A stretch of 64,000 nucleotides of DNA from Octopus bimaculoides (GCF_001194135.2 NC_069005.1:690521-754520); one strand, 5' to 3'. Positions 9,256 through 31,783 are shown, counted from the first letter of the stretch. A program made the numbers and translations. Notes: generated from the sequence alone by a model not told the origin.

Positions 9256-9960
9256 TTAAAAAAAAAAAGCGAAACATGTTTAAAATTTGACTAAATTTGA
9301 AAACATTTTTCAAAAACAAATTTAAAAAAAAAAAAGCCAAACCCACACAGAAAGAAAAAAAAAAAACAAATTGTTATTTTTTTTGTTTTTAATGGTGAGG
9401 TGAAGTGAAGAATGAACCAAGTAGAACAGAAATCTGTTTCACTTTTTTGGTGGTGGGAGATTTCGGNNNNNNNNNNNNNNNNNNNNNNNNNNNNNNNNNN
9501 NNNNNNNNNNNNNNNNNNNNNNNNNNNNNNNNNNNNNNNNNNNNNNNNNNNNNNNNNNNNNNNNNNNNNNNNNNNNNNNNNNNNNNNNNNNNNNNNNNNN
9601 NNNNNNNNNNNNNNNNNNNNNNNNNNNNNNNNNNNNNNNNNNNNNNNNNNNNNNNNNNNNNNNNNNNNNNNNNNNNNNNNNNNNNNNNNNNNNNNNNNNN
9701 NNNNNNNNNNNNNNNNNNNNNNNNNNNNNNNNNNNNNNNNNNNNNNNNNNNNNNNNNNNNNNNNNNNNNNNNNNNNNNNNNNNNNNNNNNNNNNNNNNNN
9801 TCCACTGTTTTAACACATCATGTCCGTATGGAAACCTAAAGGAAAAAAGAGAGAGAACAAAAAACTTGATTGCATTATTCTATCATCTAACGAATAGAAA
9901 GATGTTGTTTTACGAATTTATTGTATGTTTCTGCAAATGTTTTCCCTCTTATATTCTTTT

Positions 9961-11087: not shown

Positions 11088-14000
11088 CTACTTACGTCTT
11101 CTCTTAAACATGACAACCATTACACAGAGTTTCGTATGGGGTGACAAATCAACAGGAATAGCTTTCACAGGGTAGAAAGCTTTACCTTTCATCGTCTGTG
11201 ATTTCGGTCTCATCAAACTGCAACAAGAAAACAAAATCTCTCTGTATTAAGCTTGGGGAACAAAAAGGTAAAATTGGAAACTGAAGATTAACCTCCAATA
11301 TTTCTGGCAGATTCTATGATTTATAAAAACACTACTGAAGACTTCATCTTCCAAACTCTACAGTTTGTTTCTTTTACTTAAAAGTAAGCTTAACAAGTCC
11401 TTTGTCAGGTTGTTCCTCCTTCCCCTAAAGACAGACTGGGTAAGGAAGCATTTGAAAGTTGACCGTTTTAGCCATGGTTTTTGTGGTCAACAGGTTTGCT
11501 TTGCAACATGGCTTCAGGTTCAGTCCCACGGGGAAGAACCTTCTAATATAAACCTAGGGCCAATCAAAGGTGTGTGTGTGGGTGTGTTTACATGTGCTTA
11601 TATGGAAGTGTGGCAGTTGATGTGGTTGTCAGTTTCTGCTGTCAACAAATTGATTGATCACTTGAAAGAGACACAAAGGGCCTTCGAACCCGTGTGAAAT
11701 AAGTGATCCCCTATTTGGAGAACAGGTTAACGGTTGGCATCCAATCATTCAGAAAACGATCAGGGTGGTGGTGGGGGAACAGAATTTTAAAAACCACAAA
11801 AATAATAATAAAACGTATGAACAGAAGAAATAAGGCAGCTGAAAGAGTAGCAATGATGTAAATGCCCCGAACATCTAACAATAATAATAACTTACTCAGT
11901 GAAATTCTGAATGGCAGCCACAGGGTTACACGAGATGTAGATCACTCGATGGATGAAATGACAGCGGCGAAGGGCGTATATCACTTTGCTTTCTGTAAAA
12001 CAAGCAGAAGAAATAACAAGTTATTGAATAGCTATAGTTCCTGGTGAAAATTTAGGACAATATTCCAGTGTGATGTACAGATCCAGCAAACTGGGATAAA
12101 ATGTGCATTACGTTGATAAACACCAGATTGTCAGTCAAATTAATGACTGCAATTAAGATTATGATTTTTCATACCAACCCATCTCAGACTATCCTCCCTC
12201 ATTCTACTAAAAGAATTTCTTTCAACCCTTCAGTATTCAGATTAAATTGAATTATAAATTCTTATCTTTTGTCGTTTTGAATTAATCAGGCATTATCTTG
12301 TTCCTTTGAGATTTTGATGATGTGATTGTATATTTTTTTTGGAATGACATTGCAAGGTAAGTGTGAGAGACCCAATCTGGTTGGTTTGAACATAAAACAG
12401 GTAGAATATTGTAGCTGGACTTGGCCAGTTTAAATGCTAAATGAAAATGAAAGTATTTCGAGAGAAATCTAGCAGCAAAGGAGCTGCCAATGATTTTAGA
12501 ATCTACATCAATACTCCCCGCCCCCTCCTCACACTCAGGTCTTCTTGAATATGTTGCATTGTATACATCCAGGAATGACAAACTGATTGCTGTGCAGTGT
12601 TGATGGAAATACTAAACTGTAAAGGAGAGATGAATAATAAGAGCAGACGAGGAGACGGCATCATGCAGTGGCAGATTGTACAGCAAAACAATAAGGTGTG
12701 AGAGGCTGCATCTGGCCAGCTTCAAACTAAAACAATATTTGGGCCGGAAGTGATTGGTTTAAGAAACCCACGACGAGATAATCCAACATATTTTTTTTCT
12801 TTAAGATGGTAGGGTGTGACTTGAAGAACATTTGGCTGTTATTTCTTGCAAGTCAAGCAACCAAATAGCAAAATTAATTAGAAAAAAAAAAAAAAAAAAA
12901 TGAATACATAAACTTACGCATTTCAGCACAAGGCGAGTCGAGTACAGCTACTGCACTTTGACCTTTCAGCCATCGGTCTAACTGGTTGGTCACTTCCTCA
13001 GCCTTTGCATGGTGGAAGATAACATTAGTCACATCTAGAGAAGAAGAGAATAACAGGTTGTAGTCATCATCAAAATATGGATTTGTAGAAACACCAGAGT
13101 ATCAGTTGAAACATTTGACAGTTTGCAGCCCTTCACAACAAACCCCACTTTCTCTTCCCATGTTCGTTACAGCCAAGTTAATTAATTATTGACAGAAAGG
13201 TTCCACCACTGTAATTAAAGACAGGAATGGAACACTGATGCCCGATTCATTGACTTGAAGAGTCCAATTCCAGCCGAAGGATAAAGCTGCCAACAAGGCA
13301 GGGATTCTATCCACAGAGATTTCTTCCTCATTTACCCGAAACCATGGAAACCAGAGATAAACACAGTCCAGTGTGGACGTCCCTGATAAGAACAGTGTTT
13401 GCATTGTGACATCAATACCATATAAGAAAGTTCATTACAGAGTTTAAAACCAAATAATAGCTTAACGAACCCTTGGTAGCAACAGAAGAGACAACCTGGC
13501 TCAGAGTGGATTTGAACTTTTGTATCATTACAAACTGTGAATTTATATTGAAGTACAGAGCAAATTGTGGAGCTGTTAATTGCAACACAGAGTGTGTTGG
13601 TAGAGAGACATTTGGCAATGGTCAACTCAAATTTGGGAGAATGTAGCTTGATGCTATTTAAGTGTGTAGCCTTCTTTCGCAACACAGAATAATGCCACAT
13701 AAATCCAATGATCCAGTATTACACCATTTAATACTCCATCCACCCAACACAGCTCTTCCTGTCTTAAAAATGACCTTAAGAACAAGAAAGTTATTTACTA
13801 AATTCTTTCTTATTCCTAAAATTTACTGAATTAAAAAAGAGTGAATCTCAACAGAAATACAGTAAGAAGAAGGGAAAGACCTGCTCAAGAGCAATCATTT
13901 CCCTTCATCAAAACCTAATCCACATCTTTCTATACAGAAATCAACAACAACCTAGGACAGTGAGTGGTACAAAGGGATAAAGTGGGGCCAGGTAAATTTG

Positions 14001-15509
14001 AGGGGGGTCAAAAAAGTTATACAGTATTACTCTGGCACATAAGGGCTTTCAATCACCACCACCACCGTCATCATCATCATATCTAATGTCCATTTTCCTT
14101 ATGTTTGCCTGGATCAAACAGTTTATTGAGACAGATTCTTTATAATGGATGTCCTTCCTGTTGCCAATGAAGTTCATATTTCTTCACAGCCAGACATGTT
14201 TTTTCAGAAGAATGGAAACGAATGATGTTCATTTGCAACAATCATGTGATGTCAGGACAAGGAAACCCTAACATACATAACACACACACACGACGGATAT
14301 CTTTCAGTTTCCGTCAACCCAATCCAATAACAAGGCTTTGGTCATCCCAGGGCTATATTAGAAGACACTTGCCCAAGAAGTTACACATTGAGATTGAACC
14401 CAAAAACCATCTGATTTGGGAAGCAAGCTTCTCACCCACACACCCACATCAACAGACAAAAAGAAAACTAAGAAAAGATTGTATTTACTGTTTAATTCCG
14501 CATTCTTCTTTGCTTCCTCGATGTTGGCAGCCCACATATCAACAGCGACAACACTTTTTACCCTCTGAAACAAAGAGGAGAGTGTGAGAAGAATTAGGGG
14601 TACAAAGGAGAAGAAGAGAAAATAGTAGATGGGGTGGGGGGTGAGTGAGAAAGAGAATGACTAAGGTAATCAGTACGAGGGGGCTGAAGGTGGTCAGTTG
14701 GCAAAGTGACCAGCATGATCGAGGAAATGCTTGGTGTGGCATTTCTGGGATCTTTTTACATTCTGAAGTCAAATTCTGCTGAGGTCTACTTTGCCTTTCA
14801 TCCTTTCAGGGGTCAACAACATAAAAGTACCAGTTAAATACTGGGGTCAATGTAATCAAACCTTTCACCCTAAAATTACTGGCCTTGTGCCAGAATGTGA
14901 AACAATATTAGAAAAAAATCCATGCAACCAGCAGTTTTTCTTCTGCCGTTTCAATCCAATGGAAGCAAGTCTTTTTTTTTTTTAATTAATTACACTTTAT
15001 CAAAATGATTTGTTAATACTGAGTTCAACAGAAGGTAGTGGGATGGTAGAAACCACAGAGCACAATGGCTGAATGTACTGCAGCTCTTAATTTCAGGCCC
15101 CAAAATTCTGAGATCAAATCTAGTCAAAATTGACTTTGGAATATATTCTATCAGCTTTAATTCTTTAGCATTCAGCCCAAATATTTCACCTGTTTTGTGC
15201 TCAAGCCAGTTAGATCTGGCCTCTCACACCTATTCTACAATGTCATTCTAAAAATATACAATCACATCATCACCGTCTCAAAGCTGAGATTAATTCAAAA
15301 CAATGTGATTAAATAAGCATTACATTGGACAGAATAAATTCAAATTCCAAAGGATTAAATGAACGAAAGAGAGTTGTGTAAAGTGGTTTGGTATTAATGT
15401 ATCAACCTGGGTAGGTTTCAGGTTAGATTTTTAACAATGGAAACAGAACCAAGTTCGGTTGTTAGTTTTATGTGCATGCATGTATATTTGTGTATATACA
15501 GTATATAAG

Positions 15510-15548
<39 letters not shown>

Positions 15549-15775
15549 GTGTGTACATGTGTATATATATATATACAAGTAGAGTAATGCCTTGATATAC
15601 AAGTTAATTTGTACCCAGAGACAGCTCGTATGAAAACACGTAAACACTTGTAAACCTGGGGTCTCGTAAAGTGGGTACTTGTAAAGTGAGGTATTATTGT
15701 ATATATATATATTTCTGGGTACAAATGTATAAAGTATATGTGGGTGTATGTATAATTGTGTGTGTGCAAGTGCAC

Positions 15776-15815
<40 letters not shown>

Positions 15816-18800
15816 NNNNNNNNNNNNNNNNNNNNNNNNNNNNNNNNNNNNNNNNNNNNNNNNNNNNNNNNNNNNNNNNNNNNNNNNNNNNNNNNNNNNN
15901 NNNNNNNNNNNNNNNNNNNNNNNNNNNNNNNNNNNNNNNNNNNNNNNNNNNNNNNNNNNNNNNNNNNNNNNNNNNNNNNNNNNNNNNNNNNNNNNNNNNN
16001 NNNNNNNNNNNNNNNNNNNNNNNNNNNNNNNNNNNNNNNNNNNNCCAACCAACAGCAATGACAACAAAGTGATAGCTAACCTTGGCAAGACTCAGTGCCA
16101 CAGTGCCAGTGCTGCAGCAGATATTAAAGACAATGTTATTTGGTTCTTCCAAGCAAAGATCACCAACCATCGTGTAGAGGAGGGCTGCAGCAGGGTTGTT
16201 GACTAGAAAAAGAAAAAGTCTGTCATCATCATAAGTTTAACACATGTTTAAATACTAGTCAAAGGTTTAATTAAAATATAATGAACGTTCTTTAAAATAT
16301 GTTGGTAAGGGTTAGAGGAGTCAATTAGCCATTGTATTGCTATTCATTTCAAACTTTTTGTCAGATGCTTTCAACCTAATGTTTTAAGGCTTCGACCCAG
16401 TATTCCTCTGATATAATACAACCCATTTGAACCCATGACCTTGTGATATCAGTGATCACATTTGTGTTCAATAGTTATGAATGAGATTGACAGAACAAGT
16501 ACTGGACTTAATAGCATGAACAGAGGGGTCAGCGACTTTTACTAAAACGCTTCATTGACCACAGTCCAATGAGCAAAACAAGGAAGAACTCTGGTTAAGA
16601 CTGGAATTGGTGGAGAAGTAAAAACTTGTGGAGAGACTTACATGAGAAGAAAGTGTCAGGATAAATGTGGAAGCTAAGTTCTAGTAACACTTCTGTGATA
16701 CACTGAAACAGACACAAAAGAAAGTTCATTAAAATGTGACAGAGGTAATTGTAATTAAGAGAGAAGTCCTCTTGCTAGAACACAAAACTTAAATAATTAA
16801 CCCATACATTAGTATATTGCTACTGAAATACACTAGTTTTGTTTTAATTGGTTTTGAAAATAATGAAAAATTTAATAAAATAACTGTCATTATTATTAAG
16901 CTGGTGTTTGGAACTTAAATTAACAGGAAATTTTGAAGAAAGGCATTTTGTAGTGTGTCGCGGGTGAAAAACATGGCAAAGTATGCTTTCACCATTTTGT
17001 TGCCATATTTTTAGTAAAAGTACATAATGTGTGATTCAATTAATTTTGAAATAAGTTTTTTCTTGAACATAAATTAAGAAGAAATGTTGATGGGAAGTTT
17101 TAAGTTGGATCATTTTAAACAATAAGTTGATGTGATAGAAGCAATCTCTGGCAGGTTGATACCAAAAGAGTTTAATAGGGATAAGGGTTTATATAACAGG
17201 GATTAATTAAAAGACAAACTAATTTTAAATTTGATTAATTGATGAATTTCATCAAAGCCAAATTTTCTTTTTCTTTGCACAGATCAATTTTTTAAATTGT
17301 ACAAAAGATGGATCATACTAATTATTTAAAAAATATATATATTTATGCTAAATAAATGTTTTTTCCTCGTTAATACTTTAATTCTTGTAGGTTAATTTTT
17401 TCTGTTTTCAATTTCTCAAGATTAGTAATTGTAAAGAAAATGATAAAAAAAATAATCATGGAAAGAAGCCAATGTCTGAGCTAAAAGAAAACAAGCAACC
17501 GATGTTACCTTCTTGCCCCATAAATGTTCGTTGACAGCATGTTGTCTACAGCTGCCAAGTCTAGTGAAAGGAAAGAAAAACCGTTTAGAGATGAGAAGCA
17601 GAAGAGCTAAAACGAAATGGCTTAAAACTGGAGGTCAGGGTTAGTCGTTTACTTCATTAAAGATGAGGACATACAAAAAACAAAAGGAAAGATTTTTTTA
17701 AAAAATGAAAAGACAAAGATATAGAAGGAAAAATAGAATAAAAGACTATAAAAGAAAAGAATTGCAGGGGAAAAAAAGGAGAATAGAAAGAAAACCCACC
17801 AAAGTCTTCCCCTAGATACAAAGTAAGAAGAGTAAGCAAAAAGTAAGCCCCACACATTGTACAGAAGCAAAAGAAAATAAGGTGTGTGTGTGTATGGGGG
17901 TAGCAGAAACAGCTGTTTTGTTAACCCCCAAAGCTGCAAGCAAGAATCATATTCAAAGAACTTCTGAAGTAATACATTATTTCATTGCTCCACCGAATTT
18001 AAAAAGAGGATGAATTGTGTCAAGAGTTTAGAGATGCCGGAGCAGAGAGCCCCGTACGGATTAAGCAATTGCCTTCCTGAAAAAAGTTCAACTGAATTGG
18101 TTGAATACTAGACCAAAAGCCTTTGTGGCTTTTGGCCATCAAAGTATTCCCAATCCGAATGTCAAGAACCTGTTTGTCTTTAAATTATGCATTTCTCAGT
18201 TCCCTTATAATTAAGTTCTCTAATTTGAGGAGAATGCCAACCATTGTTGGTAAGTAGTATACTTAACCCAATGTAAAACTATTTGTCTTTATTCACGATA
18301 AAATGCCTACAATCATATCAATTATGTGTGAGTGTGTGAATATACACACAAAAAATAATAATAAAGAATGGAATTAGCTAATTATGTTTATTGTTTCATT
18401 AACTTCAATTAAACCAATTTTGTGTCATGACATTGCCATGTCATCAATGCATGTCTGTACACATATCATAATTTAACGTCCACCTTCCATGCTAACATGG
18501 GTGGGACAAATATTCATGTACGTCTTTCTGTTTGTGCTCCCCACTGCTTGACAATCAGTATCAGTTTGTTTGTCGTAACTTAGCAGTTCAGCAAAGGAGA
18601 CTAATAAAATAGGTACCTGACTTACAAAACAAACTAAAAAACTGGAGTCAATTCATTCAATTAAAACCCTCCAACATGGCACCCCAACAACCAATAAAAG
18701 ACAAAAAAAAAACATATATACAGGACAGGCTTCTTTCACTTTCTGTCTACTATCCAATCCACTCACAAGGCTTTGGTCAGTCCGAAGCTATAGCAGAAGA

Positions 18801-21800
18801 CACTTGCCCTAGGTGCCATGCAGTGGGATTGAACCCTAGAACCATGTGGTTGTGAGACAAGCTTCTTGCTATACAGGTACGTCTGTGCCTATGTATATCT
18901 GTAAACACCCAAACACGCTCACCTGTTACTCAAGCATCTGAAGTAGAGGGATGTCACGCCACACTGGACTCCATCACCATCAGAGAAATACTCCGTCATT
19001 GCAGCTTTCTCAGCATCCACTTCATCCTGCAAATGAAAAAAAAACAAACGACAAAATCAACTCGAGTCAGCTTTGTCTGGTCTGATTCTTCCTTCTTTTA
19101 TGAGTTTTCAAGAATCTAAAGTTTGAGTGAAAGATTTTTTTTTTTTGTTGCAAATATAATATAAAAACTATTTCTTGACTTAATTCAGCAGAGAGAGGCA
19201 AAACATCTGGTTCAAAGATGAAGGGGGAAAACCTTAAGAACCTTTTGACCACAGCACTCCCAAGATGAGCCTTTAAGACAAATAGATTTATGAAGAAAGG
19301 AAAAGAAATGTTACAAGAAATGGATAACAAAAAGGAGAGGGAGAAAGAGAGAGAGAGAGAGAGATCATCATTTGATATTCAGCTTTCCTTGCTTGGATGG
19401 GTCAGACTGAATTTGTTGAGGCAGATTTTCTAGGACCAAAAGACCTTCCTGTCACCAACTTTGACCTGTTTCCAAGCAAGGTCAACGGCCAGACATGTTT
19501 AACACAGAAGATTGGAAATGAATGACCTCACTTGTATGATGGTGATGTTTATTTACAATCAGTATTGTCATGTCGAGACAAAGGGGTACACACATACAAG
19601 CATCTATACATGACAGGCTTCTTTCAGTTTCCGTCTACCAAATTAACTCACAAGGCTTTGGCTGGCCTAAGATGCCACACTACAGGACTGAACCTGAAAC
19701 CATGCGGCTGGAGAGCAAGTTTCTTAACCGTAAAGCCACACACAAAAGACCAGGCAGAGAAAACAAACGACAAAAATACTTACATCTGAGAGAAACTGAG
19801 CATAAAAAACAGGAATGATCATGATATCGTTTTGGCTGGATGTGCGAACAATCAGCTGCCTCCAGTGACCATCATGTGTCTGGTCATTGTAAACATCGTA
19901 CTGGCTCTGACGGACATACTGTTGGAACACTTTGGCGATGAGTTTCATGGAATCTGGGAGATTGTCACAGGCGTACGGTTCGCCAACAACACTAGAACCA
20001 TCACGGTAACTGCCGACCCGAAAGCCAACTATTCTTTCATTAGTGCCATTTGAGCTGCTAGCAATGGTGAATTCAGATTTATTGCGATAAGCATTCAAAA
20101 CAGGTGAAGGCCTTATCTTTTCGATTTCACAAAGAACTCCAGAATGATTCTTCATCTGTTCCTTGAGCCAATTTCTCCATTTTGGACATGTGCGGTGAAC
20201 TTCCCAACTAAATTTCACCATGGCATCTCTGACATCAGAAGCTTTACGCTAAAAAAAACATTACAAAAAAGAAAAACAAGTAAATAAACAAAAATAAAAG
20301 AAAAACCCTCATTAGCATCGTTTAATTATTCTTTCTTATTTTTGATTATGTTTAATATTTTATCATGCTTTTGTGAAGAATGAGACCTGTAGTCCCTTGC
20401 TGTAAGCCAGTTCATGTAACCTATTCAAAGGGGAATGTTGCAATAATCAGTGAAAAAGGTAAGAGGACTGATGTGATAAAAGACATTAATACTAACACTA
20501 CAAAAACATTTTGGAAAGAAACCAAAGATGTCATGGTTGGCAAGGCAAGAAAAAAAAAAAAAAACATAATATACAAAGCAAGTTCTACCTACCCTGAGCT
20601 GATCTTCATATGGTACATCACAAAATGGCAATAAGGCTCGTTTAACCCTAAGAAAAAAAGGATAAATTAAAAATAGAATTATTAATCCCAAAGTCAAATG
20701 TCCATTAGATAGATCAGTGGTTTCCAACCTGTGATCCAAGGACTCCTGGTGGTCTGCAAGCTAAATTCAAAATATCACACACACAAACTAGACGACACGT
20801 GACCTGTTGGGTCACTGACGGTTCAGGTTATAAAACAATGGAACTGATTTCAACATTGAAATGAAAGTTAATTTTATGAGGATTCACTTAAATAATTCAA
20901 TTTGTTTGCGTCAGGTTTACAAGTTCATGTTTAAGGTTTTATTGATTATTTACAGCATCTAATAGAAATAGAACTTCCAAGATAAACTTGAACCCTAGTA
21001 ACAGCATTTATTTATGTTATATGTGCACAAAAAGGAATTGTTATACAATATAAATATAAAATTAATGGAAACAATTTTCCCATTTCAGAAGGTTGTTTGG
21101 GATGTGCTAGAATCTCCCTTGAATCACACACCCTTTCCTCTGAAAATATTTACAATTTTTTCTTTTTTCTACCAAAACAGCTCCTCCCATGGTTTTTAAG
21201 TTAAATCCTTAGGTACTCTGAATCCACAGCATCTAAATGGTATTCGTTGAAAATTTTGTTAAAAAGTATCCATTCTTCTGAAAGTTATGAGGTTACAAAG
21301 TCTGTGGGGTACACATCTGTAGTTATGCCAACAAAACTATCCAGTGTTCACAGTACAGAGCAACAAGTCCAGGTTTTACTGCTTAAATTTGTGGAACCCC
21401 CCCCCCCGCCAAAAAACCCCACATATCTCAGGAATCTGTGGTCCGATTTACGCGAACCTTGTTTTATTCCATTTGCATTCATATTTCAGAGCATTTTCCC
21501 ATCATGCACTGGTTTGACTGTATTAAATGACAGGCAGGCAAGCAATGAGAAGAATTTTAGTAGTATATAGATATACATACAAGGATAAGGATATTAAAAG
21601 GGGTCTATGGAGAAACACATTTAAATAAAAGGGGTCGTTGCTAGTGAAACGGTTGGGAATCACTGAGATAGATAGATATATGATGGTGGTAGGATGGTTG
21701 TGGAGTAGATAAAGTACCTATGTCATAATTATTCTAGGTACTCTACCTTATATACTCAACAAGGAGACAGTTATAGGATGTATCTATAATTTCCAGGCCA

Positions 21801-24499
21801 AAATGTGGACATTATGAACAGTTTCTGCTGTTTTTTTTGCATTACATTTTGAACTCAGGAATCACTTCCATTTACATGACTCCCACCGCCTCTAAATCTT
21901 AAATTTCATCAGCTTAAAAGTAAACAAAAACAGTAAAAATAAAAACATTAAATCAGAAATGAATTGACTGAAATTTCCACTTTGAAATGGCGTCAGACAT
22001 GAACAGAGTTCAATAAAATTCATTTTCTCCAGAATAAGTGTCAAAGTTTAGAAAACCTCCAAATAACCACAATCACCTTTGCATTAACCTAATCCACTGG
22101 ACAATATTGTTATCTGCTGAATAGTAAATCTAAAAGTGGGACTTAGAATAGAACAGCTGATAAGAGTACCAAAGTAAGAGTAAGGTGGTGGTGGGGGTGG
22201 GAGTGTCGATAGAAATGTGGCCAACATGAAGTGAAAGAACTTAATTTACAAGAATTAAAAACAAAAAATGGTTTTCACTTACTTTTCACCAGCTGTGGTA
22301 ATATCATCTGGGATGTCTATAGATATTTTACTTTTCTTGGACTCTGACACATCCTGAGATGACCCTGCAGCAAAACACCAGGACATTCGTTATTTAATGA
22401 TGGCAGTGGTGGTAGGGTTAGCAGAGACAGTCATCATCAACTGACAGCTTCTGAATGGATTTAGTAGATGGAAGCTGAAAGAAACCTGTATATGTGTGTG
22501 TGTGTGTGTGTGTGTCTTTGTCCTCCACCACTGCTTGACAACTGGAGCTGGTGTGCTTATGCCTCCGTAACTTAGTGGTTCAGCAAAAGAAACTAATAGA
22601 ACAAGTACCAGGCTTAAGAAATATAAGTCCTGGGGTCAATTTGTTCGACTAAAACCCTTCAAGGCGGTTGCCCCAGTATGGCTGCAGTCAAATGACTGCA
22701 ACAAGTAAAACGAAAAGAAAAAAAAAAGAGTTGGAAATAATTAGTGACCTGACATTTCTGTGAACTAATTTGTATTCTTAATGCCTCATCTTTCAGATTT
22801 ATTTTGAGTTTTGAGTTGTGAAAATGGTGCTTTGTCGTGTCTTGAGAATTCCTTGTTATTTTATTTCATGAATTTTATAAACAACAACTTTGCACAGAAA
22901 CACAACAAACATCTTAAAATGGAAAAGACTTACAGAACTAAAAATAAGTATACATATCGTATGAGCTCGTGTCACGTAAAAAGCACCCAGTCCACTCTGT
23001 AAAGCGGTTAGTGTTAGGAAGGGCATCCGACCTTAGAAACCAAACCAAATCAGGTGGGAATCTAGTACAGCCCTCCAGTTTGCCAGCTCTGGTCAAACCA
23101 TCCACCCTATGCCAGCATGGGAAACGGATGATAAATGATGACGATGACGATGATGACATTACCTCTAAACACTCAATCAAATGTCACTGATTATCACTGA
23201 GACAATGTCAACTAGACTGAAATATATCGGGTTACAAGGGCGGTGGGGAAAGGGTTTTAACATCAATGAATAAAGAATGAGATATAAAATATTTTACCTG
23301 CAACATCTTTACGCTTAGCAGACAGGTTCTCAAAGCTTTGATCAGATATCTATGGAAGAAAAGAAAAGAAATAAATAAAATTGGAAATTTGTAGGGAGTA
23401 AACAATGTATGCTTATTTCATGAACCAGGAAAGGATGAAAAGCAAAGATGATTGCAATAGAACTTGAACTCACATTCTAGAGAAAGCAAAACAATTGTTT
23501 TAATAAATTAAAACGTTTAATTCATTATCCAACCCTTTCTACCAATGCTTATAAGACGTATCACTACAACTGGCAGAGCGTCTCCATCCCTCCCTCCCTC
23601 TGTAGGTCTATGTACTCCCCAAAGACAACGTATTGCAGTTATCTCCCTTGGTTCGTGTTAGTCATCTGGAAGATGGTACTGTTGGTGACATACTTCTGCC
23701 ACTGTTCATTAGTGTGTGGGAATGTAATTAACTGATAGCTCATATGATGGTAAAGTCCTCACCCAGTCAATTATTTTAGTTAAAGTCTGCTAGCAACTCA
23801 ATACCAGCCACGTTACTAACGAGCAAATGGGGACCACAAAAGCCCGTTTCCATTTCAGCCCTTACTTCTGACGCCACGGCACAACTATTTGTGGTTCATA
23901 AATGTTATTGGAAAGGCACACATTAAGAATCGTTCTGTACATGGAAATAGCAAACACTTCTTATTTGCACATCACACATCATTCACCATACGTGCAAGTG
24001 TATTATACAACATCCTAGAGAAGATAGGTGTTTCTCTTCTCCTGCAAAACACCTTATCCTGTCCTCCTTTCCTGGCACAAAGCTCCCTCCTGCAATACTG
24101 CACCCTCAGTCAGTAAAAGGGTCTTATCTTGCAAGTCACTTGGTGACCCTACTAATGCTGGTACTATGAAAAACACCCAGTCCACACTCTGTAAAGTGGT
24201 TGGCATTAGGAAGAGCATCCAGCTGGAGAGACCTTGGCAAAGCAGACACTGGGGACTTAACACAGTCTTCAGGCTTATCAGGTCTTGTCGAACCATCCAA
24301 TCCATGTCTGCATGGAAAATGGACATTTGATGATGATGATGATGTGTAATAGGGAAAGACAATTCACACGACACTTCTCTCAACAGGATTCCAACATTTT
24401 ATTAGTCAAAATTGACAGAAATATCTAAAAACCACACAAAAGCATAACAGGTCTACTTACATTGCTGTTGTTGTTTCTGTTGGTTTCGGCCTCCATCAT
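11088..24499 (-). CDS. TRMT2A-like tandem paralog ('copy B'), 13 coding exons, 483 aa, no RRM, catalytic motifs degenerate (putative pseudo-enzyme)
   Basis: GT-AG exons in phase with no internal stop: 24499-24461 (MMEAETNRNNNSN), 23349-23298, 22364-22283, 20647-20593, 20248-19784, 19026-18923, 17560-17509, 16702-16642, 16202-16081, 14564-14489, 13034-12918, 11992-11896, 11217-11088 (TAG). Eight exons equal their copy-A homologs in length (55, 104, 52, 61, 122, 76, 117, 97 nt). Retains YRNKSEF, WRQLIVRTS and YISCNP. AATAAA on the minus strand at 10906-10911. The N-terminal exon assignment is less certain than the rest. Confidence 0.9.
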
Positions 24500-24599: not shown

Positions 24600-25490
24600 A
24601 TCCATGAACAGTAACAATGTTGGGAACATCCTTAAATGGGGACATGGTAAGTTGGTGTCCTTCCACCCCCAAGTACAACATATATCAAAGCAAACAGGTT
24701 TCTACCTGTACCCTCTGGTTATGAACAACAACACAGCTAAACCTTTCGCAGGGGTTGCAACCACCACAAAAGCTCTCAACTTCTGGTGATCTCTCATTGA
24801 AGCTTCACAGACCATTGCCAAAAGGAATTTGTGATTTGTCCACCTTCCTACTTACTAAGACTTTGGTTTTTTTTTTGGTTAACTCTAAGGCCCTTTGATT
24901 CTAATCCTTGCTTCCACACCTGAAACTTCTTCTCTAGTTCTTATAGTGATTCAACTATAAGAGCAAGGTCATCAGCATAGAGGAGTTCCCAGGGGCAACC
25001 TGTCTTGGATTCCTGTTATTGCTTGGAGGACTATGATGAANNNNNNNNNNNNNNNNNNNNNNNNNNNNNNNNNCTATGATGAACAAGAGGGGGCTGAGGA
25101 CTGATCCTTGGTGAACCCCTAAATGTACCTCAAATTCTTCGCTATACTTGTTGCCAACCCTCACCTTACTGACAGCATCCCTGTACATGGCTTGTACAGC
25201 TCTCACCAACCATTCATATATCCCTAGTTTCTGCATTGACCACCAGATAAGGGATTGTCAGCAAAACCCAAGTACAGAGGTTTATCTTTGGAGAGATATT
25301 TCTCCTGCAGCAGTCGGACCAGAAATATAGCATCAGTGGTGCTTCTCCCTAGCATAAACCCAAACCACTTCTCATCTAAACTAATTCTCTCCCTAATTAG
25401 TTGGGCTATGACCGTCTCCGTAATTGGGTTTGATATAACTGGGCCCTCCACACTTCTCTATAGCCTTGTTTTTACAGTAGAAATCTTTAT
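24600..25490 (-). mobile_element. Degraded non-LTR retrotransposon (RTE-like LINE) reverse-transcriptase fragment
   Basis: Broken frames give FGFMLGRSTTDAIFLVRLLQEKY, LIWWSMQKLGIYEWLVRAVQAMY, GVHQGSVLSPLLFII and ELLYADDLAL (YADD at 24968-24979), with stops and frameshifts. Confidence 0.88.
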
Positions 25491-25584: not shown

Positions 25585-26720
25585 CCTGCACAGCTGAATC
25601 AAAACCGGAACTAAAGAAGAAATTTCAGGTATGGAAGCAAGGACTGGAGTCAAAAGGGGCCTTAGAGTTTATTCAGCAAAGGCCAAAGTATCGATAAGTA
25701 GGAAAACACAAATTACAGATCCCTTCAGGGAGATGGCCCTGTTCGATATGTAGAAAAGGTGTTAGGGTAAACTCCATACGGTGTACCCGGTGCAAGCTAT
25801 GGACACATAAGTGCAGTGGTATCACTGGAAAGTAGCATTTACATGTGGCAGATGTGAAATACATGAAACACCAAGAATGTACAAAAAAGAGAATCCCTCA
25901 AATGTCAGAATAGTAGACAGTTTCTGTTACTTAGGTGACAAGTTAGTAGTGGTGGAGGTTGTTCTGAAAGCATAGCTGCAAGAATAAGAATAGGCTGGGT
26001 AACGTTCAGAGAGCTACTACTTGTGTTAGTAAGAAAAGGCCTGTCCCTCAGAGTGAAAGGCAGATTGTATGATGCCTGTGGATGAACAGCCATGCTTCAT
26101 GGCAGTGAGACATGAACTGTGACTGTTGAGTGTACATAGAAAGGCTTGAAAGAAATGAAGCTAATATACTCTGCTGGATGGATAATATCAGTGTGCAAAT
26201 ACGTATTTGAGCTGAGAGAGAAAAACTGGGTATACATGGGCATCAGGTGTAGCGTGCAAGAGAGAAGACTGCACTGGTATGGCCATGTAATGCATATGAA
26301 TGAAGACAATTGCATCAAGAGGTACCAATCTCTAAATGTGGAGAGAACATGTAGAAGGGGTAAAGCTAGCAAGACATGGGACAAAGTGGTGAGAAAGGAT
26401 CTCCAGACGTTGGGCCTCACAGAAGGGATGACAAGAAACCAAGAGCCCTGATGGTTTGTTGAGCTTGAAAAGACATGTCAAGCTAAGTAAAATTGAGGCT
26501 GTCCTTGCATACAGGCAGGTTCCCCACATCCCTCTTCAGCTGAGTGTTTCTAATCTTGCGGGTGCCATGTAAAAGCATCCAGTACACACTCTGTAAAGTG
26601 GCTGGTGTTAGGAAGGGCAACCAGCTGTAGAAACCATGCCAAAGCAGACATGAAACCAGGGCAGTTCCTGTCAAACCGTCCAACCCATACCAGGGAAATG
26701 GAAAACGGACGTTAAATTAT
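25585..26720 (+). mobile_element. 5'-truncated RTE-like LINE: post-RT region, Cys-rich segment, C-terminus and 3' tail
   Basis: KKFQVWKQGLESKG, WPCSICRKGV...CTRCKLWTH, FCYLGD, ERRLHWYGHV, RRGKASKTWDKVVRKDL. Followed by the 3' tail (..gtccaacccatacc...ggaaaacggacgttaaa) shared with many short repeats in the window. Multiple stops. Confidence 0.85.
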
Positions 26721-27999
26721 GATAAACATATGCAATACAAACACAAAATGTTTTAATTACACATTTATATATACATAATATACATATATGCATACACACA
26801 CATAATGAACAACATAGCACGAATCAGAAGTACTGAAAAAAACAACTTAAATATTTTGACACTCGAAAGCTTTCTCTTTGCCTTTTGTATTGTAACTACT
26901 ACGGCTTCTGCACCCTCGTAACTCCTCCCTTCACTATACCCACTCTTTCTCCTACAATTCCCCACCCGCTATATCGACAGTTTACGAGGAAACATTAATT
27001 ATCGGGATATGTCTCATATCCGAGCCCTCGTCCTTATCATTATTCAGCAAAATGGTAGAATCGTTAGCACGATGGGCAAAAATCATGAGCGGCATTTCGT
27101 CTGTCTTCAAGCTCTGAGTTTAAATTTGGCCGGGGCCGATAAAATAAGAACCAGTTGAATACTGAGGATCGAAATGTAATCAATCTATCCCTTTCTCCCA
27201 ACGTACTGGCTTTGGGCCAAAATTTGAAATCAATATTTTTTTTTTCTGGCTTTACGTTCGGAGTTCAAATTCCGCTGAGGTGGACGTTACCTTTCATCTT
27301 TTCGGAATCGATCAAAGAAATACTTGTCAAATACTGGAAATCAATGAAATCAACTAGCCCCCACCCCCACCGCCTCACACAAAATTGCAGGCCTTGTGCT
27401 TGAAATTCTGGGGGAGGGGGCAACTCATTTTCATCATAATAGAAAGGGTTATTACTCTTACAAGGACAGGCAAACTAGCAGAATCGTTACCGCATTTTAC
27501 AAAATACTCGGTAGCATTTCATCTGGCTTTTTCATTCCGAGTTCAAACCCAGCTGAGGTCGACTTAGTTTTTGATCCTTTTGTCGGATACCAGTTAAGTG
27601 AACCTAATCGACTTAACTACCTTCCCTAAATTCAGGCCTTATGTCTAGAGTAGAAACAATTATAAAGATTGTGATTGTTAGGAATTTAGCCGAATTCGGA
27701 GGCTCTGTTTACTAATCTAGACACAATAAAAGGGGGAGTGTTTGTGTGTGTGGTGGGGGGACGTGTTTCTTTTACTTCAACCTTATATAAGTTGGATGAA
27801 AAGTGCTGTATTTCACTGTTGTTTCAAATACATAAACCAAGTAAGCACAGTGCTTGGTCTTTTTTTGCGAAAATAAAAATAACATTTTAACTTTTATTCT
27901 TGAGGCAAGTCGAAGACGTCTCTATGTGATTGTTCTAACTTACGAGAAATAGCAGCCAAATCTCCTTCAAAACATACACTAGTCTCAAAGCAAGAAAGA

Positions 28000-29400
28000 A
28001 GAACGGATAATGTAGTCTTGAGAAGACGGAGTGGTCACGGTTGGAAAAAAATCTGATGATAAGTCTGAGTGTCGTGGTGTCTCAGGCAGGTAGACAAGAG
28101 AAACCTGCTTCAGTGTCTTTAAGAATTAAGGCGACATATGTGGTGGATATTCTATTAACATGAAAAAGACTGGCTCTCGTAATAATAATAATTGTTGTTG
28201 TGATGGAAGCAACAAAATCTGGTCTGTTTTTACGAGGCGGAAGTAAGAGGATTGAGTGACATTCATGCTTGTCACGGGCAAGAATATCAAAAACCAAAGA
28301 TGAACATAAGGTAACAAATTTATAACTGAACGAAACAAAGAATGTGTGGTAGTCATGCCTTTTCGACAACAACAACAATAATAACGGTAACTAAAATATG
28401 CCAATACCAACAGGACACGAAGAAGAAGCGGCGGCGGTAAAGGTATTTGGTTGAATTAAGGAGATTTTAGCTTGGAATTTTAATGGTTTTTCTTTTTTTG
28501 TGGGATTTAGAGAAAAATACAAATAACAGACTAGAGACGAAATAGAATTCTATCTCTCTCTCTCTCAAATAATAAATTAAATTAAACACAAAACAAACAA
28601 GAGCATCGTTGTTGTTGTCCCGTCTTTTACAACCAAACTGTTCTGGGTTTGGTGAATGGAACGGAATACAGGTAAATGGATAATTATATTAATTAAAGAC
28701 AAGACGAACAATTAAGGGTTAGTCGAGAGGATGGAAGTAAAGAACATTAAGCATTTGAAGGCGACAAAAAAATATTAATTAATAACGGATACAAGTGGTT
28801 AGTTCTTACATTAATGTCGTCTTGCAATAATCGACTACAACAAAAAACGGAGCCATTCACTGCGGAGACACCGCGCTGACGAGTGAGGTGGTGGTGGCGG
28901 CGGTGATAGTGACTACATAGACACATACACATATATAGAGAGAGACACACACATACACGTGTGTTGGACTTTTACACACAATCGCCTCGATGAGAATTTA
29001 TATAAACATACATTAACAGAATATTTTTAAATTTAATTATTTTCAAATAAAAATGTAAAAGGAAAAAAAATGATACTTACAAATGAGAAACATTTCGGTA
29101 CATTTATTATGATAATTATATATATATTTTAATATAATTATTGTAATGATTATTTGAAATGTTCGTATTTTTTGTTTTGATATTATTTACATATTTTTTT
29201 TCCAATTATTATATCGTTTACTGCTGCAACTATTATTTCTATACTATTACGAAACTAAGACTCTATCATTAAACTTAATTACATTCCCGCGCTACACCTC
29301 CTCACAACGAGGCTCCACTTAATCCTCGAGCCCAGCCTCGTTGTCGTCACCGGAAGTAAATCTTGCAGCACACTAAATAAATAAAAATGTCAATAATTTT
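28000..29400. promoter_or_regulatory. CpG-enriched candidate promoter / first exon of the TRMT2A-like paralog
   Basis: Local CpG and GC enrichment (gcggcggcgg, ccgcgctgacg). ETS-type CCGGAAGT at 29350-29357 and GCGGAAGT at 28237-28244. Candidate minus-strand first exon ending at a GTAAGA donor (28809-28804). Copy B's start exon has an acceptor at 24506-24507 and so needs an upstream UTR exon. Confidence 0.35.
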
Positions 29401-31783
29401 TTTAAAATCGTTTCTAATTGTTCTCTCTGAATATGGAGGTAGATCCGAATAAAACTTTCGTCTAAAGTCTTACTACTATTTATTTTTAAGTAAACAAAGA
29501 TGGCAGCTTGCTTCCCAACCACATCGTTCCGGGTTCAATCCCTCTGCGTGACACCTTGAGCGAGTGTCCTCTACTGTAACCCCAGACCAACTAAAGCCTT
29601 GTGAGTGGATTTCGTGGACAAAAACTGAATCCATATACATATATGTGTGTGTGTGTGCATCCAACCACCGCTTCACAATCGGTATTCGTTTGTTTACGCC
29701 CCCGGAAATTAGCCGTTCGGCAAGAAAGATTGATTTTCAACATTCAATACATTGAAGGCTTTAAACAAAACCTAAGTTGAGATTAGGAGTGTGATTCGTG
29801 ACATTTGCATTGGTTTTTCCCTTCAGTCAACACAATTTGAAGTATAAAGTGTTTTTTAAGACACCACATCTTTGAAATGGTTTTTTTTTTTGGACGGTTC
29901 TATGTATATACTTTGGGCTAGCAATCTGAATTCATCTTGAGTATTCTGTACAGATGAGCTGAAATAAATGAAATACTGATATCTGTTTATGCCTTTCAAT
30001 TCCACATTCAAAAGATACACAACATAACAGTGGTATAAATGATATTTCTGCTCTATACAACATAGTACATTATTTCACTCATTAGCAGGATATATAGGTT
30101 CAATTTAGTAACATTTGATCATGAAAACTCATTGAATAGATAACCAACCTGTTAATTTCAGATGACTGAGAAGTCCCAGTTGTAGAGTTTCTGCCCATCC
30201 TAGTCATTGGCAGAGCAAGCGAAATAATTGCAAGTGGTAATTAAGCCTGTTTGGGTCGCAAGGTGCTAATTCCATATGTTAACATTTTGTTACCATATTC
30301 TCCTGTAAATATGCCACCTTTGTTTCAAATGATTTTGAAAATAATGAAGAATTTAGAACAATAACTTTTTTTCAGAAGAAAAATTAACACAAAATTTTGA
30401 TGGAAGAAAGTTTTAATTTTGATCACTCTGAAAAAGTAAATTTTTATCATTAGAACCAGGGTCGTTCTCTAAAGGGTTGAATTATCAACATATAAATAAT
30501 GATAAACAATAAACAGATGTAACACAAACTGCAATTTATTCCAATAAGTAATAGCAATATGGGAGCAACTCAAGGGTCTGTTTTAGGTTGTCATTGCTGG
30601 CCAGGGCTTTATGAGATTGGAGTGCAAATCCTAGTTGGACCACTTTTAGTCACCTTTTATGACACAGGGAAGAAATGCTGGGTCTATCCTTAGACGTGCC
30701 TAAACCTGTTGAGGAAATATTTTTGCTAAATTGAACTCATTCTGATTTCCAATCCCAATGAAAGCTACTTCACTTTATTAATGCTCCCACCCCACCCCCC
30801 GAAAGGTCCGAAATCAACAGCATTCAATTCCAGTCAACCTATAAGTCCCAAGCTGTCTCTCACCATCATTGTTCTAATGTCCACTTTTCCATGATTGCAT
30901 GGCTTGGATGGAATTTGTTGAGGCAGATTTTTAATGGCTGGATGCTTTTCCCTTTGCTAACCCTCACCTATTTCCAAACGAGGGAATATTTCTGCATGAC
31001 TAGACATATTTTCATAAAAGATGGCAACAAGCAACACCACTTGGATAACAGTGACACTCATTTACAAATATCACACTATGTCAAGACAAAAACACACACC
31101 CATACACAATGAACTTATTCCAGTTTCTCTTTATGAAACACAGTCACAAAGCTTTGGCAGGCCTTGGGCAATAGTGAAAGATGCTTGCTCAAGATACCAT
31201 GCAGTGAGACTGAACCTGGAGCCATGTGGTCAATAAGAAAGCTTAACACCACAGTCACACCTGTGAATCTATACAGGAAAACAAACAATATGCTGTGATT
31301 GATTCAATTCTATGAACCATAAACAGAAAATGTCCGACAAAAGGACCCAGTTTTTTGTTCACTGACAGCCAGAACAGGATGAAGAACAGACATGTTTGTG
31401 ATAAAACTGGACTTTTCTACTCTCATGCCGAGGTCCCTGGCCAGTATTACACGTCTTCTTAATACACATGGTTATGTCCCCTGAAAGACCAAGCACTTTC
31501 TTTGATTCCCCACATTCTTATATATTCTACAGTAACCAAACCCACAAATTGGCCTTAAACCTTCAGATGTTATCTCAAACATAAGACAGATCAGGGAAAC
31601 CATAAAGCAACAGTTTTATTTCTCATATGTTCATCTGATGAGAGGCATATGTAGACAGTCCATCATATCAAAAAATATGAAATATATTTTAAAAATAATA
31701 TCAATCATTTACATTGTCATGATTATAATCATCATCATCAGCATTATAATCACTACTAACTTCATTTACTTTTCATATAATTG

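Follow-up and report, generated by a model that had tools for sequence, protein, structure and literature searches.

A tandem TRMT2A paralogue of octopods with degenerate catalytic motifs is under strong purifying selection

TRMT2A, Trm2 and TrmA are tRNA (uracil54-C5)-methyltransferases of one family (COG2265, PF05958). The usefulness of the TrmA scaffold on tRNA extends beyond methylation: the enzyme has a tRNA chaperone activity that is independent of catalysis (PMC7641329), and the C538A and E581A mutants of human TRMT2A retain tRNA binding (PMC10484741). The phenotypes of TrmA mutants, C324A among them, are documented; the covalent intermediate is almost entirely lost in Q190A, in G220D and in E358K, D299A yields no m5U, and R302A is only mildly defective (PMC1904294). 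The mitochondrial relative TRMT2B has no N-terminal RRM and is reported to be enzymatically active (bioRxiv 10.1101/797472). In a different family, NSUN7 provides a precedent for a conserved but inactive pyrimidine-C5 RNA methyltransferase (PMC12804707).

The window analysed here, a stretch of 64,000 nucleotides of Octopus bimaculoides DNA, contains two TRMT2A genes in tandem on the minus strand, which we call copy A (45854-31784) and copy B (24499-9810). Copy A has the make-up of a canonical TRMT2A, namely 19 coding exons, an RRM and an intact set of catalytic motifs; its apparent frameshift is caused by a 10-N gap (32051-32060) within the C-terminal repeat. Copy B is a degenerate TRMT2A-like paralogue. 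Mapping of the NCBI proteins XP_014773283/4 (both at 100% identity and with GT-AG at every junction; the former as XP_014773283.1) gave an isoform X2 CDS of 489 aa in 14 coding exons: 24499-24461, 23349-23298, 22364-22283, 20647-20593, 20248-19784, 19026-18923, 17560-17509, 16702-16642, 16202-16081, 14564-14489, 13034-12918, 11992-11896, 11217-11096 and 9835-9813, followed by the stop at 9812-9810. An earlier note on this DNA had described in-phase GT-AG exons without an internal stop, which the mapping bears out. It had also proposed 13 exons and 483 codons; the 482-aa protein of this model ends in KRRRK, and this end results from reading through the donor after 11096 to a stop at 11088, and the 14-exon structure replaces it. 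The last exon is a new micro-exon that encodes the C-terminus FHTDMMC, so that the protein ends in RRRFHTDMMC. It has no counterpart in copy A or in the outgroups, and its equivalent in Argonauta reads YRSDMMC.

Copies A and B have 12 introns in common, at the same positions and in the same phases. Exon 5 of copy B (19784-20248, 465 nt) is a fusion equivalent to exons 7-11 of copy A (95+49+64+107+147 nt), and four adjacent ancestral introns are gone within it; TRMT2A of Lingula and Crassostrea has all 18 A-type introns with matching positions and phases. Exon 1 of copy B directly abuts the homologue of copy A exon 4. A Pfam profile search found no RRM_1 match in copy B and one in copy A, and the 14 invariant RRM columns are all missing from copy B. 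In a neighbour-joining tree, copy B is nested among the cephalopod TRMT2A proteins (100% bootstrap) and groups with octopod A (81%). We conclude that copy B arose from copy A by a tandem duplication at the DNA level, before the split between Octopus and Argonauta, and that it no longer has the RRM and four adjacent introns but has gained the C-terminal micro-exon, all differences from the TRMT2A/Trm2/TrmA family; the loss of four neighbouring introns is a pattern typical of recombination with cDNA. Copy B resembles TRMT2B in having no N-terminal RRM, but TRMT2B is an active enzyme, whereas copy B is degenerate. Orthology with TRMT2B was considered and rejected, because copy B goes back to a local tandem duplication of A, groups with cephalopod TRMT2A and has the intron positions of A.

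Several catalytic residues and the RRM are missing, and an assembly gap falls within the gene span, so that copy B might be taken for a pseudogene in decay or an artefact of annotation. The gap (a run of N at 15816-16044), however, lies wholly within intron 9 (16080-14565), 36 nt after the donor and 1,252 nt before the acceptor, and hides no coding sequence. The gap-free orthologue of O. sinensis has the same 122-nt and 76-nt exons on either side of this intron and aligns to both flanks of the gap, where the ≈ 54 nt unaccounted for are a (CA)n/(TA)n microsatellite. The protein join over the gap, SLAK/RVKSVVAVDM, is the same in O. sinensis and Argonauta. Intact orthologues, likewise made up of 14 GT-AG exons and degenerate in the same motifs, are present in O. 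sinensis, O. vulgaris and the distant octopod genus Argonauta (A. hians). Between O. bimaculoides and O. sinensis, dN/dS of copy B was 0.05-0.07 over 462 codons (pN/pS = 0.054; ML omega 0.073), with 40 synonymous (Sd) and 8 non-synonymous (Nd) differences (Fisher p = 8e-21 against neutrality); for the same pair, copy A gave the higher value of 0.10-0.13. Octopus and Argonauta copy B proteins are 84-85% identical over aligned positions at saturated dS. A pseudogene, whether processed or decaying, is refuted by the intact reading frame in four species, the 13 canonical introns and the low omega; we attach practically no weight to this explanation, and the view of the earlier note that copy B is not a decaying pseudogene stands on both counts, selection and sister-species orthologues.

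The motif differences between A and B listed in that note are all present. All nine motif strings lie on the minus strand: seven occur as uninterrupted genomic sequence, and AFFQIN and TFFSFN, which are split by a splice junction, appear in the spliced proteins. TrmA numbers are placed on copy B by means of a TrmA sequence that was checked at W202 and G360 (PMC1904294). Motif X (16643-16648, minus strand, as are all motifs below) keeps F302 (TrmA F188) next to S303, which replaces the uracil-reading Gln (TrmA Q190); the Phe and the Ser are found in every copy B orthologue. SAM motif I, FNICCSTGTVA (16096-16128), has N330 (AAT) for Asp and S334 (AGC) for Gly (TrmA G220), and the latter position is Asn in Argonauta copy B. 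The third Gly of this motif is kept, and the Glu of motif II is changed to Asp, so that an acidic residue remains. In motif IV, LDSPCAEM (12919-12942), D402, the critical residue, is kept (TrmA D299) and C405 replaces Arg (TrmA R302). The nucleophile of motif VI, C430 in YISCNP (11930-11928; TrmA C324, human C538), is present in all copy B orthologues. Finally, V473 (11123-11121) of motif VIII, DLSPHTKLCV (11121-11150), takes the place of the general-base Glu (TrmA E358, human E581). This Val (GTA/GTC) occurs in all full-length copy B orthologues, whereas the 194 other homologues that have a residue in this column all have Glu.

Of seven TrmA residues that mutagenesis has identified as important (PMC1904294), copy B has replaced four (the equivalents of Q190, G220, R302 and E358), and among 202 metazoan homologues only the six copy B proteins carry substitutions there. 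The reported loss of the Gln, the Glu and key SAM-loop residues was confirmed. The claim that copy B keeps only the nucleophilic Cys was overstated, since the Phe of motif X, the Asp of motif IV and an acidic residue in motif II are kept as well. The idea of a covalent RNA trap is disfavoured, because copy B is substituted at all three positions (Q190, G220 and E358) at which mutation nearly abolishes the covalent intermediate of TrmA.

Among 44 metazoan TRMT2A proteins we defined positions that are at least 90% invariant. In the methyltransferase domain, 21/61 of these positions are changed in both B orthologues, compared with 2/32 for the central domain (Fisher p = 0.002), and the changes cluster in the catalytic and SAM motifs. 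The tree gave a stem of 0.41 for B versus 0.10 for A, and thereafter slower rates in the B crown. Amino acid divergence between Octopus and Argonauta is 14.7% for B and 22.8% for A in the central domain, and 8.5% and 13.8%, respectively, in the methyltransferase domain, which is the best-conserved part of copy B (91% identity). Copy B thus went through a burst of substitutions in its catalytic and SAM-binding motifs, followed by purifying selection stronger than that on the active parent, and the motif changes are now frozen. That copy B is nearly unchanged from Octopus to Argonauta points to a working gene with a new job. Residue loss, purifying selection and conservation across species together mark it as a putative pseudoenzyme, a selected but catalytically degenerate paralogue.

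The family fold appears to be preserved. Copy B matched Pfam PF05958 with 46.2 bits (cutoff 23); the match ends at profile position 329/357 and therefore leaves motif VIII unmatched. Copy A retrieves copy B at E = 1e-164, and sequence matches in the PDB were RlmCD, PabTrmU54, RumA and TrmA. The AlphaFold model, for which the input alignment was dominated by active orthologues, has a mean pLDDT of 80.7, with 342 residues above 90. The best Foldseek matches of this model were 5XJ1/5XJ2, 8Z62, 1UWV/2BH2, 2JJQ and 3BT7 (E = 1e-20 to 1e-28), that is, RlmCD, RumA, PabTrmU54 and TrmA-RNA, with target TM of 0.70-0.75. Copy B is thus predicted to consist of the central beta domain and the Rossmann methyltransferase domain typical of TRMT2A/Trm2/TrmA. 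The pI of the core is 8.3-8.5.

We estimate at roughly 0.6 the probability of the following reading: copy B is a TRMT2A paralogue that functions and is maintained by selection, has very probably lost tRNA m5U methyltransferase activity and acts by binding, most likely to tRNA or T-arm-like RNA. Judged from its residues, a protein lacking the uracil-reading Gln, the Gly and Asp of motif I, the Arg of motif IV and the general-base Glu would be incapable of forming m5U and should build up no covalent adduct. The intact central domain, the basic core, the predicted fold and the conserved Cys loop suggest that it may still dock RNA stem-loops, and it could serve as a chaperone, a shield or a reader, or compete with copy A and so tune what is within its reach. 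Chaperoning by TrmA is the second function of an active enzyme (PMC7641329), whereas in copy B it would be the sole function; F106 and H125, wedge residues of TrmA, have no reliable mapping onto copy B. Like copy B, NSUN7 is a paralogue of active enzymes that has kept its cysteine motifs and has a degenerate SAM-binding site, and its role is non-catalytic; it differs in belonging to the NSUN family, in being vertebrate-wide and in that its inactivity and phenotype are experimental, whereas copy B belongs to TrmA/TRMT2, is octopod-specific and is considered inactive from sequence (PMC12804707). Two observations argue against the preferred reading. High-affinity binding of tRNA by human TRMT2A depends cooperatively on the RRM (PMC10484741), and copy B has no RRM. 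In addition, no part of the protein is better conserved than the remodelled methyltransferase domain, an observation that fits a specific, possibly catalytic pocket at least as well as a passive binding surface.

The latter point also favours an enzyme with a new chemistry or substrate, in which the motif-IV Cys (DPPR to DSPC) would replace the Glu base in a two-cysteine arrangement like that of RNA m5C methyltransferases, and the missing uracil-reading Gln would shift base specificity. Copy B has the pattern D-S-P-C (402-405) plus S-C (429-430), and the position of C405 is, we presume, that of the motif IV 'PC' Cys of m5C methyltransferases (NSUN/Trm4/RsmB). C405 is invariant across the B orthologues, constraint on the remodelled pocket exceeds that on the active pocket of A, and the nucleophile loop is 100% conserved with diverged synonymous sites (13/33 codons). 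The two-cysteine mechanism is documented, and RlmI is an m5C enzyme that is closer to the m5U enzymes (PMC2836557). Nevertheless, the homology of copy B is to m5U and not to m5C enzymes, the side chain of RumA at the Arg/Cys position touches the ribose and not C5, and a change from Arg to Cys is a single, common mutation. Furthermore, Asn has taken the place of the motif-I Asp, the position that corresponds to TrmA G220 has Ser or Asn depending on the genus, as expected if SAM binding is gone, and G220D abolishes TrmA activity (PMC1904294). We therefore consider an altered enzyme unlikely.

Coleoids recode their mRNAs extensively by A-to-I editing, and this might conditionally restore SAM binding. 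By codon inspection only, a single A-to-G change would turn AAT (Asn330) of motif I into a codon for Asp, at 16125, and AGC (Ser334) into one for Gly, at 16113. Editing, however, cannot revert the Ser (TCA) that replaced the Gln at 303 or the Val (GTA) that replaced the Glu at 473, and the Asn (AAC) at the Gly position in Argonauta would need two edits, which makes this explanation highly improbable.

Alternatively, copy B could act mainly via copy A and regulate the m5U54 activity of A, either as a non-catalytic partner or as an antagonist, be it in a heterodimer, as a scaffold or as a dominant negative. Degenerate paralogues frequently pair with an active enzyme: METTL14, DNMT3L and Trm6/TRMT6 work in obligate or regulatory complexes with active partners. 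They resemble copy B in being degenerate and retained under selection beside an active enzyme, and differ in that their complexes are known, whereas an interaction between A and B is hypothetical. O. sinensis, O. vulgaris and Argonauta hians share the gene order RanBP1/A/B, and the close tandem linkage is preserved in three genera. The 5'-most exon of the O. vulgaris copy B models has a homologue at 31556-31603 (minus strand), a candidate exon in O. bimaculoides that lies ≈ 185 nt 3' of the copy A stop and immediately follows an AATAAA (31620-31615); its proximity to the end of A suggests coupled transcription. On the other hand, TrmA and TRMT2A are described as working alone on tRNA, the human enzyme in a 1:1 ratio (PMC10484741), and the substitutions in B cluster in active-site motifs, with no identifiable surface patch. 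A role through copy A is thus possible but doubtful. Transcription of copy B is indicated indirectly by multi-isoform annotations in three species; an alternative upstream 5' exon (28810-28932, minus strand) of NCBI isoform X1, common to the O. vulgaris models, has a weakly conserved in-frame ORF and is probably 5' UTR.

Continuing sequence exchange between the two genes in the Cys exon would likewise fit a partnership. Copy B exon 12 (11992-11896), which encodes YISCNP, and its short intron flanks (11879-12003) are identical to copy A (33226-33102) at 118/125 nt, both on the minus strand, and we attribute this to gene conversion. The earlier note had described synonymous sites in the last exon as heavily substituted. 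This holds for exon 13, in which 15/24 codons for identical residues differ synonymously between A and B, but not for exon 12, in which the ≈ 125-bp conversion tract has left such differences in only 2/31 codons.

In the 64-kb Octopus bimaculoides window, the minus strand carries two TRMT2A-type genes in head-to-tail order. The canonical gene, copy A (45854-31784), has 19 coding exons, and its product has the RRM and a full set of catalytic motifs. Downstream of it is copy B, whose isoform X2 coding sequence (P0123) runs from an ATG at 24499 to a stop at 9812-9810 on the minus strand and specifies 489 aa in 14 coding exons, with every junction GT-AG. An alternative upstream exon (28932-28810, minus strand) yields NCBI isoform X1, that is XP_014773283.1 (P0001; 'tRNA (uracil-5-)-methyltransferase homolog A isoform X1'), which maps to the window at 100% identity. 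The nine motif strings cited in an earlier reading of the sequence were all present (9/9); AFFQIN and TFFSFN are split by introns and were seen in the spliced products only. The C-terminus proposed in that reading (KRRRK-stop, ending at 11088) turned out to be a read-through of the donor after 11096. In the true transcript, this donor is joined to a 23-nt micro-exon (9835-9813, minus strand) that encodes FHTDMMC; the equivalent Argonauta exon gives YRSDMMC, and the ...DMMC end is kept in Octopus and Argonauta. An N gap (9467-9800) adjoins the micro-exon, and the 3' UTR enters this gap 10 nt past the stop. The intron between the alternative 5' exon and exon 1 contains, at 25457-24958, the remnant of a retroelement: ORF fragments resembling reverse transcriptase, broken up by a 33-N gap (25041-25073).

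The copy-B frame is continuous across the N run at 15816-16044. The run lies wholly within intron 9 (16080-14565), whose donor (AAG/GTTAGC) is 36 nt before the gap and whose acceptor is 1,252 nt after it. In the gap-free O. sinensis orthologue, the flanking exons (122 and 76 nt) have the same sizes as in O. bimaculoides, and the intron aligns on both sides of the gap, leaving a ≈ 54-nt (CA)n/(TA)n microsatellite as the sole remainder. The protein join of exons 9 and 10 is the same in O. sinensis and Argonauta. Coding sequence concealed in the gap is ruled out by the intronic position and the O. sinensis alignment. In copy A, a 10-N gap (32051-32060, within the stretch 31784-32110) falls in the last exon, inside a tandem repeat of a 12-residue type, and causes an apparent frameshift; the reading frame resumes past the gap and ends ...EVAMQS. 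This gap may account for the O. bimaculoides copy-A protein being missing from the protein database. In Argonauta copy A (970 aa), this acidic repeat tail, which contains Cys, has expanded greatly.

Annotation lists B-type proteins for O. bimaculoides and O. vulgaris, with two isoforms each (one of the O. vulgaris pair retains an intron), and for O. sinensis and Argonauta hians. Mapped back to their own gap-free loci, the proteins of the last two species each gave the same 14 coding exons, flanked by canonical splice sites. The order RanBP1 (divergent), A, B is identical across three genera; Argonauta copy A lies ≈ 11 kb upstream of copy B, outside the 10-kb upstream flank. Selection statistics were computed on 462 aligned codons. 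Between O. bimaculoides and O. sinensis, copy B has 40 synonymous and 8 non-synonymous differences, and copy A 44.5 and 16.5. The corresponding pN/pS values were 0.054 for B and 0.10 for A, the ML omega values 0.073 and 0.13, and the Fisher p values against neutrality 8e-21 and 2e-18. Between Octopus and Argonauta, dS is saturated and NG86 and YN00 give no usable estimate; dN was 0.09-0.10 in B and 0.12-0.135 in A, and divergence was 14.7% versus 22.8% in the central domain and 8.5% versus 13.8% in the MTase domain. The lower omega, dN and domain divergence of copy B indicate stronger constraint on the degenerate copy than on the active one. The earlier note argued against a simple decaying pseudogene, and the intact orthologues of copy B and a dN/dS far below 1 bear this out. 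A pseudogene or an annotation artefact is refuted by the same evidence, and copy B is a live gene. In the protein database searched, entries from transcript assemblies were absent for both octopus copies.

Since 12 intron positions are common to both copies, copy B was made by duplication of genomic DNA. It lacks the RRM-coding part, exon 1 joining straight to the homologue of copy-A exon 4, and it lacks four adjacent introns between copy-A exons 7 and 11. The resulting fused exon (20248-19784, minus strand, 465 nt) equals five copy-A exons (95+49+64+107+147 nt) and was also found in copy B of O. sinensis and A. hians (465/483 nt). Lingula and Crassostrea TRMT2A have 18 introns, exactly those of octopod copy A in position and phase; it was therefore copy B, not A, that changed, by losing four introns. 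The absence of four adjacent introns is a pattern typical of cDNA recombination and suggests such an event. A processed retrocopy is ruled out by the 13 introns kept, and a partial cDNA-mediated event explains the four that are missing. Copy B also gained the 3' intron and the micro-exon. RRM loss, intron loss and micro-exon are common to Octopus and Argonauta and are thus older than their split.

An NJ tree built on 457 ungapped columns with 500 bootstrap replicates placed copy B within cephalopod TRMT2A (100%), beside octopod copy A (81%). The tree, the tandem position and the introns in common with copy A rule out a TRMT2B orthologue. The copy-B stem was four times as long as that of copy A (0.41 versus 0.10), and the crown branches were slower in copy B. 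With respect to the octopod/decapodiform split, the tree favors an octopod-specific duplication (81%), and the count of shared derived residues is ambiguous (2 versus 4 sites); copy B may instead have arisen before that split and been lost subsequently. The decapodiform proteins in the database, including that of Sepia pharaonis, were A-type, with none of B type.

The protein changes were scored against 44 metazoan TRMT2A proteins other than copy B, at the 117 columns with at least 90% invariance. Both copy-B orthologues deviate at 40 of these columns, 14 in the deleted RRM and 26 by substitution; comparable changes numbered 1-6 in control lineage pairs and 14 in one beetle pair. Invariant positions were substituted at 21/61 in the MTase domain versus 2/32 in the central domain (odds ratio 7.9, p=0.002). 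In isoform X2 numbering, the substitutions affect motif X (S297Y, A300T, Q303S, E310A), motif I (L329F, D330N, G334S/N, I338V, G339A), motif II (G351A, E353D, A358N), motif IV (V401L, P403S, R405C, G407E, L408M) and motif VIII (F466S, H471L, E473V), and only position 334 varies between genera (Ser versus Asn). Among 202 metazoan homologues, the equivalents of TrmA Q190, G220, R302 and E358 are substituted in the six copy-B proteins only. These equivalences follow a numbering of the E. coli sequence that agrees with the published W202 and G360. The nucleophilic Cys is not, as had been claimed, the only residue kept: copy B also retains a Phe in motif X (TrmA F188), an Asp in motif IV (TrmA D299), the third Gly of motif I and an acidic residue in motif II (Glu to Asp). 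Copy B passes the Pfam PF05958 threshold, with a match that ends before motif VIII, its core is basic (pI 8.3-8.5), and it is predicted still to fold like an m5U methyltransferase. The MTase domain is its most constrained part (91% Octopus-Argonauta identity), and the nucleophile-loop exon is its most conserved single exon.

Seven residues of E. coli TrmA affect formation of the covalent intermediate, activity or both: F188, Q190, G220, D299, R302, C324 and E358 (PMC1904294). Q190A forms almost no covalent intermediate and retains 14% m5U, E358K forms very little intermediate and retains 9%, and neither intermediate nor m5U is obtained with G220D or C324A; D299A makes almost no m5U, and R302A is mild (87%) (PMC1904294). 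Given that the Q190, G220 and E358 equivalents are changed and the motif-I Asp is Asn, the parsimonious inference is that copy B makes no m5U. The earlier note had also allowed for a covalently trapping protein. In RumA E424Q, the methylated adduct is trapped only with SAM present (PMC1904294). Adduct formation itself needs residues lost in copy B, so no stable trap is expected, and the Q190A, G220D and E358K phenotypes lead us to judge this model unlikely.

Most likely, copy B is a non-methylating RNA-binding protein descended from TRMT2A. The central domain, which contacts tRNA in the TrmA/TRMT2 family, is nearly untouched at invariant positions, fold and basic charge appear to persist, and the nucleophile loop is the best-conserved exon. 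Human TRMT2A, which uses C538 and E581, continues to bind tRNA when mutated to C538A or E581A (PMC10484741); tRNA folding by TrmA is independent of catalysis (PMC7641329). Copy B might serve as a tRNA chaperone or shield, a reader of unmethylated U54, a competitor of A or a binder of other stem-loops. Against RNA binding, human TRMT2A requires its RRM for high-affinity tRNA binding, and copy B has none. Caution also comes from the remodelled MTase domain being the most constrained part, which suggests that the new pocket does something specific. The earlier interpretation thus holds for conservation and selection, and is probable as regards inactivity and RNA binding.

A less likely reading of the pocket is a re-engineered enzyme. 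The change from DPPR to DSPC brings in a Cys, coinciding with loss of the Glu base, at a place where RNA m5C methyltransferases presumably have their product-release Cys. A two-cysteine mechanism and an m5U-like m5C enzyme, RlmI, are documented (PMC2836557). Two points weigh against it: motif I has degenerated and varies at the G220 position, and at the site of the DSPC Cys, RumA has an Arg that contacts the ribose. In its full form, with the motif-IV Cys replacing the Glu base in a two-cysteine, m5C-like pyrimidine-C5 enzyme, loss of the Gln shifting base specificity and SAM binding tuned by editing, we regard this proposal as very improbable. If true, catalytic mechanism and specificity would have switched within the last few hundred million years, and this would explain why the remodelled pocket is under more constraint than the parental active site. 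That editing restores SAM binding is likewise less likely: the codons of Asn330 (AAT, 16125-16123, minus strand) and Ser334 (AGC, 16113-16111, minus strand) are each one A-to-G change from Asp and Gly, but Q303S and E473V are not revertible by A-to-I. Both motif-I codons, AAT and AGC, are candidates for coleoid A-to-I recoding.

In most exons other than 12 and 13, A and B have diverged at ≈ 40-75% of synonymous comparisons. The heavy divergence noted earlier holds for exon 13 (15/24 identical-residue codons differ) and fails for the YISCNP exon, exon 12 with the nucleophile C430 (2/31). The low value is due to an A/B gene-conversion tract of ≈ 125 bp (A 33226-33102, B 12003-11879, minus strand; 118/125 nt identical) that spans the catalytic-Cys exon and 12-16 nt of intron per side. 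The YISCNP string is indeed present unchanged, but within Octopus this is partly a product of conversion. The Octopus copy-A tract differs from Argonauta B at 9-12 of 84 nt and from Argonauta A at 16-17, and its YISCNP has Ile as in copy B, at a position where Val is present in Argonauta A, decapodiform A and the outgroups. Conversion thus probably ran from B to A, and the active enzyme of Octopus probably carries a B-derived Cys exon. This exon encodes the same 33 residues in copy B of Octopus and of Argonauta despite synonymous differences in 13/33 codons, which is evidence of constraint independent of conversion.

The continuing sequence exchange, the tight linkage of A and B and a possible coupling of their transcription speak for copy B as a partner or antagonist of copy A, which we consider less likely than a role in RNA binding. 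The O. vulgaris copy-B models begin in an exon whose O. bimaculoides homologue (31603-31556) is ≈ 185 nt past the copy-A stop and directly follows an AATAAA (window 31556-31620). Transcription of copy B may start at, or read through from, the copy-A 3' end.

The octopus lineage is already noted for unusual RNA biology. As judged from its sequence, copy B is a catalytically degenerate paralogue, kept by selection, of an RNA-modifying enzyme; conserved inactive paralogues of such enzymes are a recognised kind. It resembles NSUN7, a pyrimidine-C5 RNA methyltransferase paralogue that is conserved though inactive (PMC12804707), with the inactivity of B being probable. In the literature library searched, we found nothing linking TRMT2A with octopus or citing the copy-B accessions, no degenerate paralogue described in the TrmA/Trm2/TRMT2 m5U family, and nothing relevant on pseudoenzyme paralogues of tRNA methyltransferases. 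Public annotation calls copy B merely 'TRMT2A' or 'TRMT2A-like', and transfer of the label 'm5U54 methyltransferase' by orthology is probably wrong. Copy B is a natural experiment in which evolution removed the RRM and the uracil-reading, SAM-binding and general-base residues, and the remodelled domain has been more tightly constrained than the working enzyme throughout the Octopus-Argonauta divergence. It gives direct access to the proposed functions of TrmA and Trm2 that do not depend on catalysis.

Ran-binding-domain peptides mark RanBP1 exons at ≈ 51673-53469 on the plus strand, divergent to the copy-A start (45854, minus strand). The divergent RanBP1/copy A arrangement is also annotated in O. 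sinensis and Argonauta. Mammalian RANBP1 and TRMT2A (HTF9C) also share a bidirectional promoter, and the pairing of RanBP1 with copy A would then be ancient microsynteny. Finally, a SINE-like dispersed repeat of ≈ 190 bp with a CAT/ATC run occurs in five copies (63677-63867, 26557-26723, 3385-3550, 22969-23145 and 24169-24340), two of them inside copy-B introns 1 and 2, and is also present in the O. sinensis flanks.
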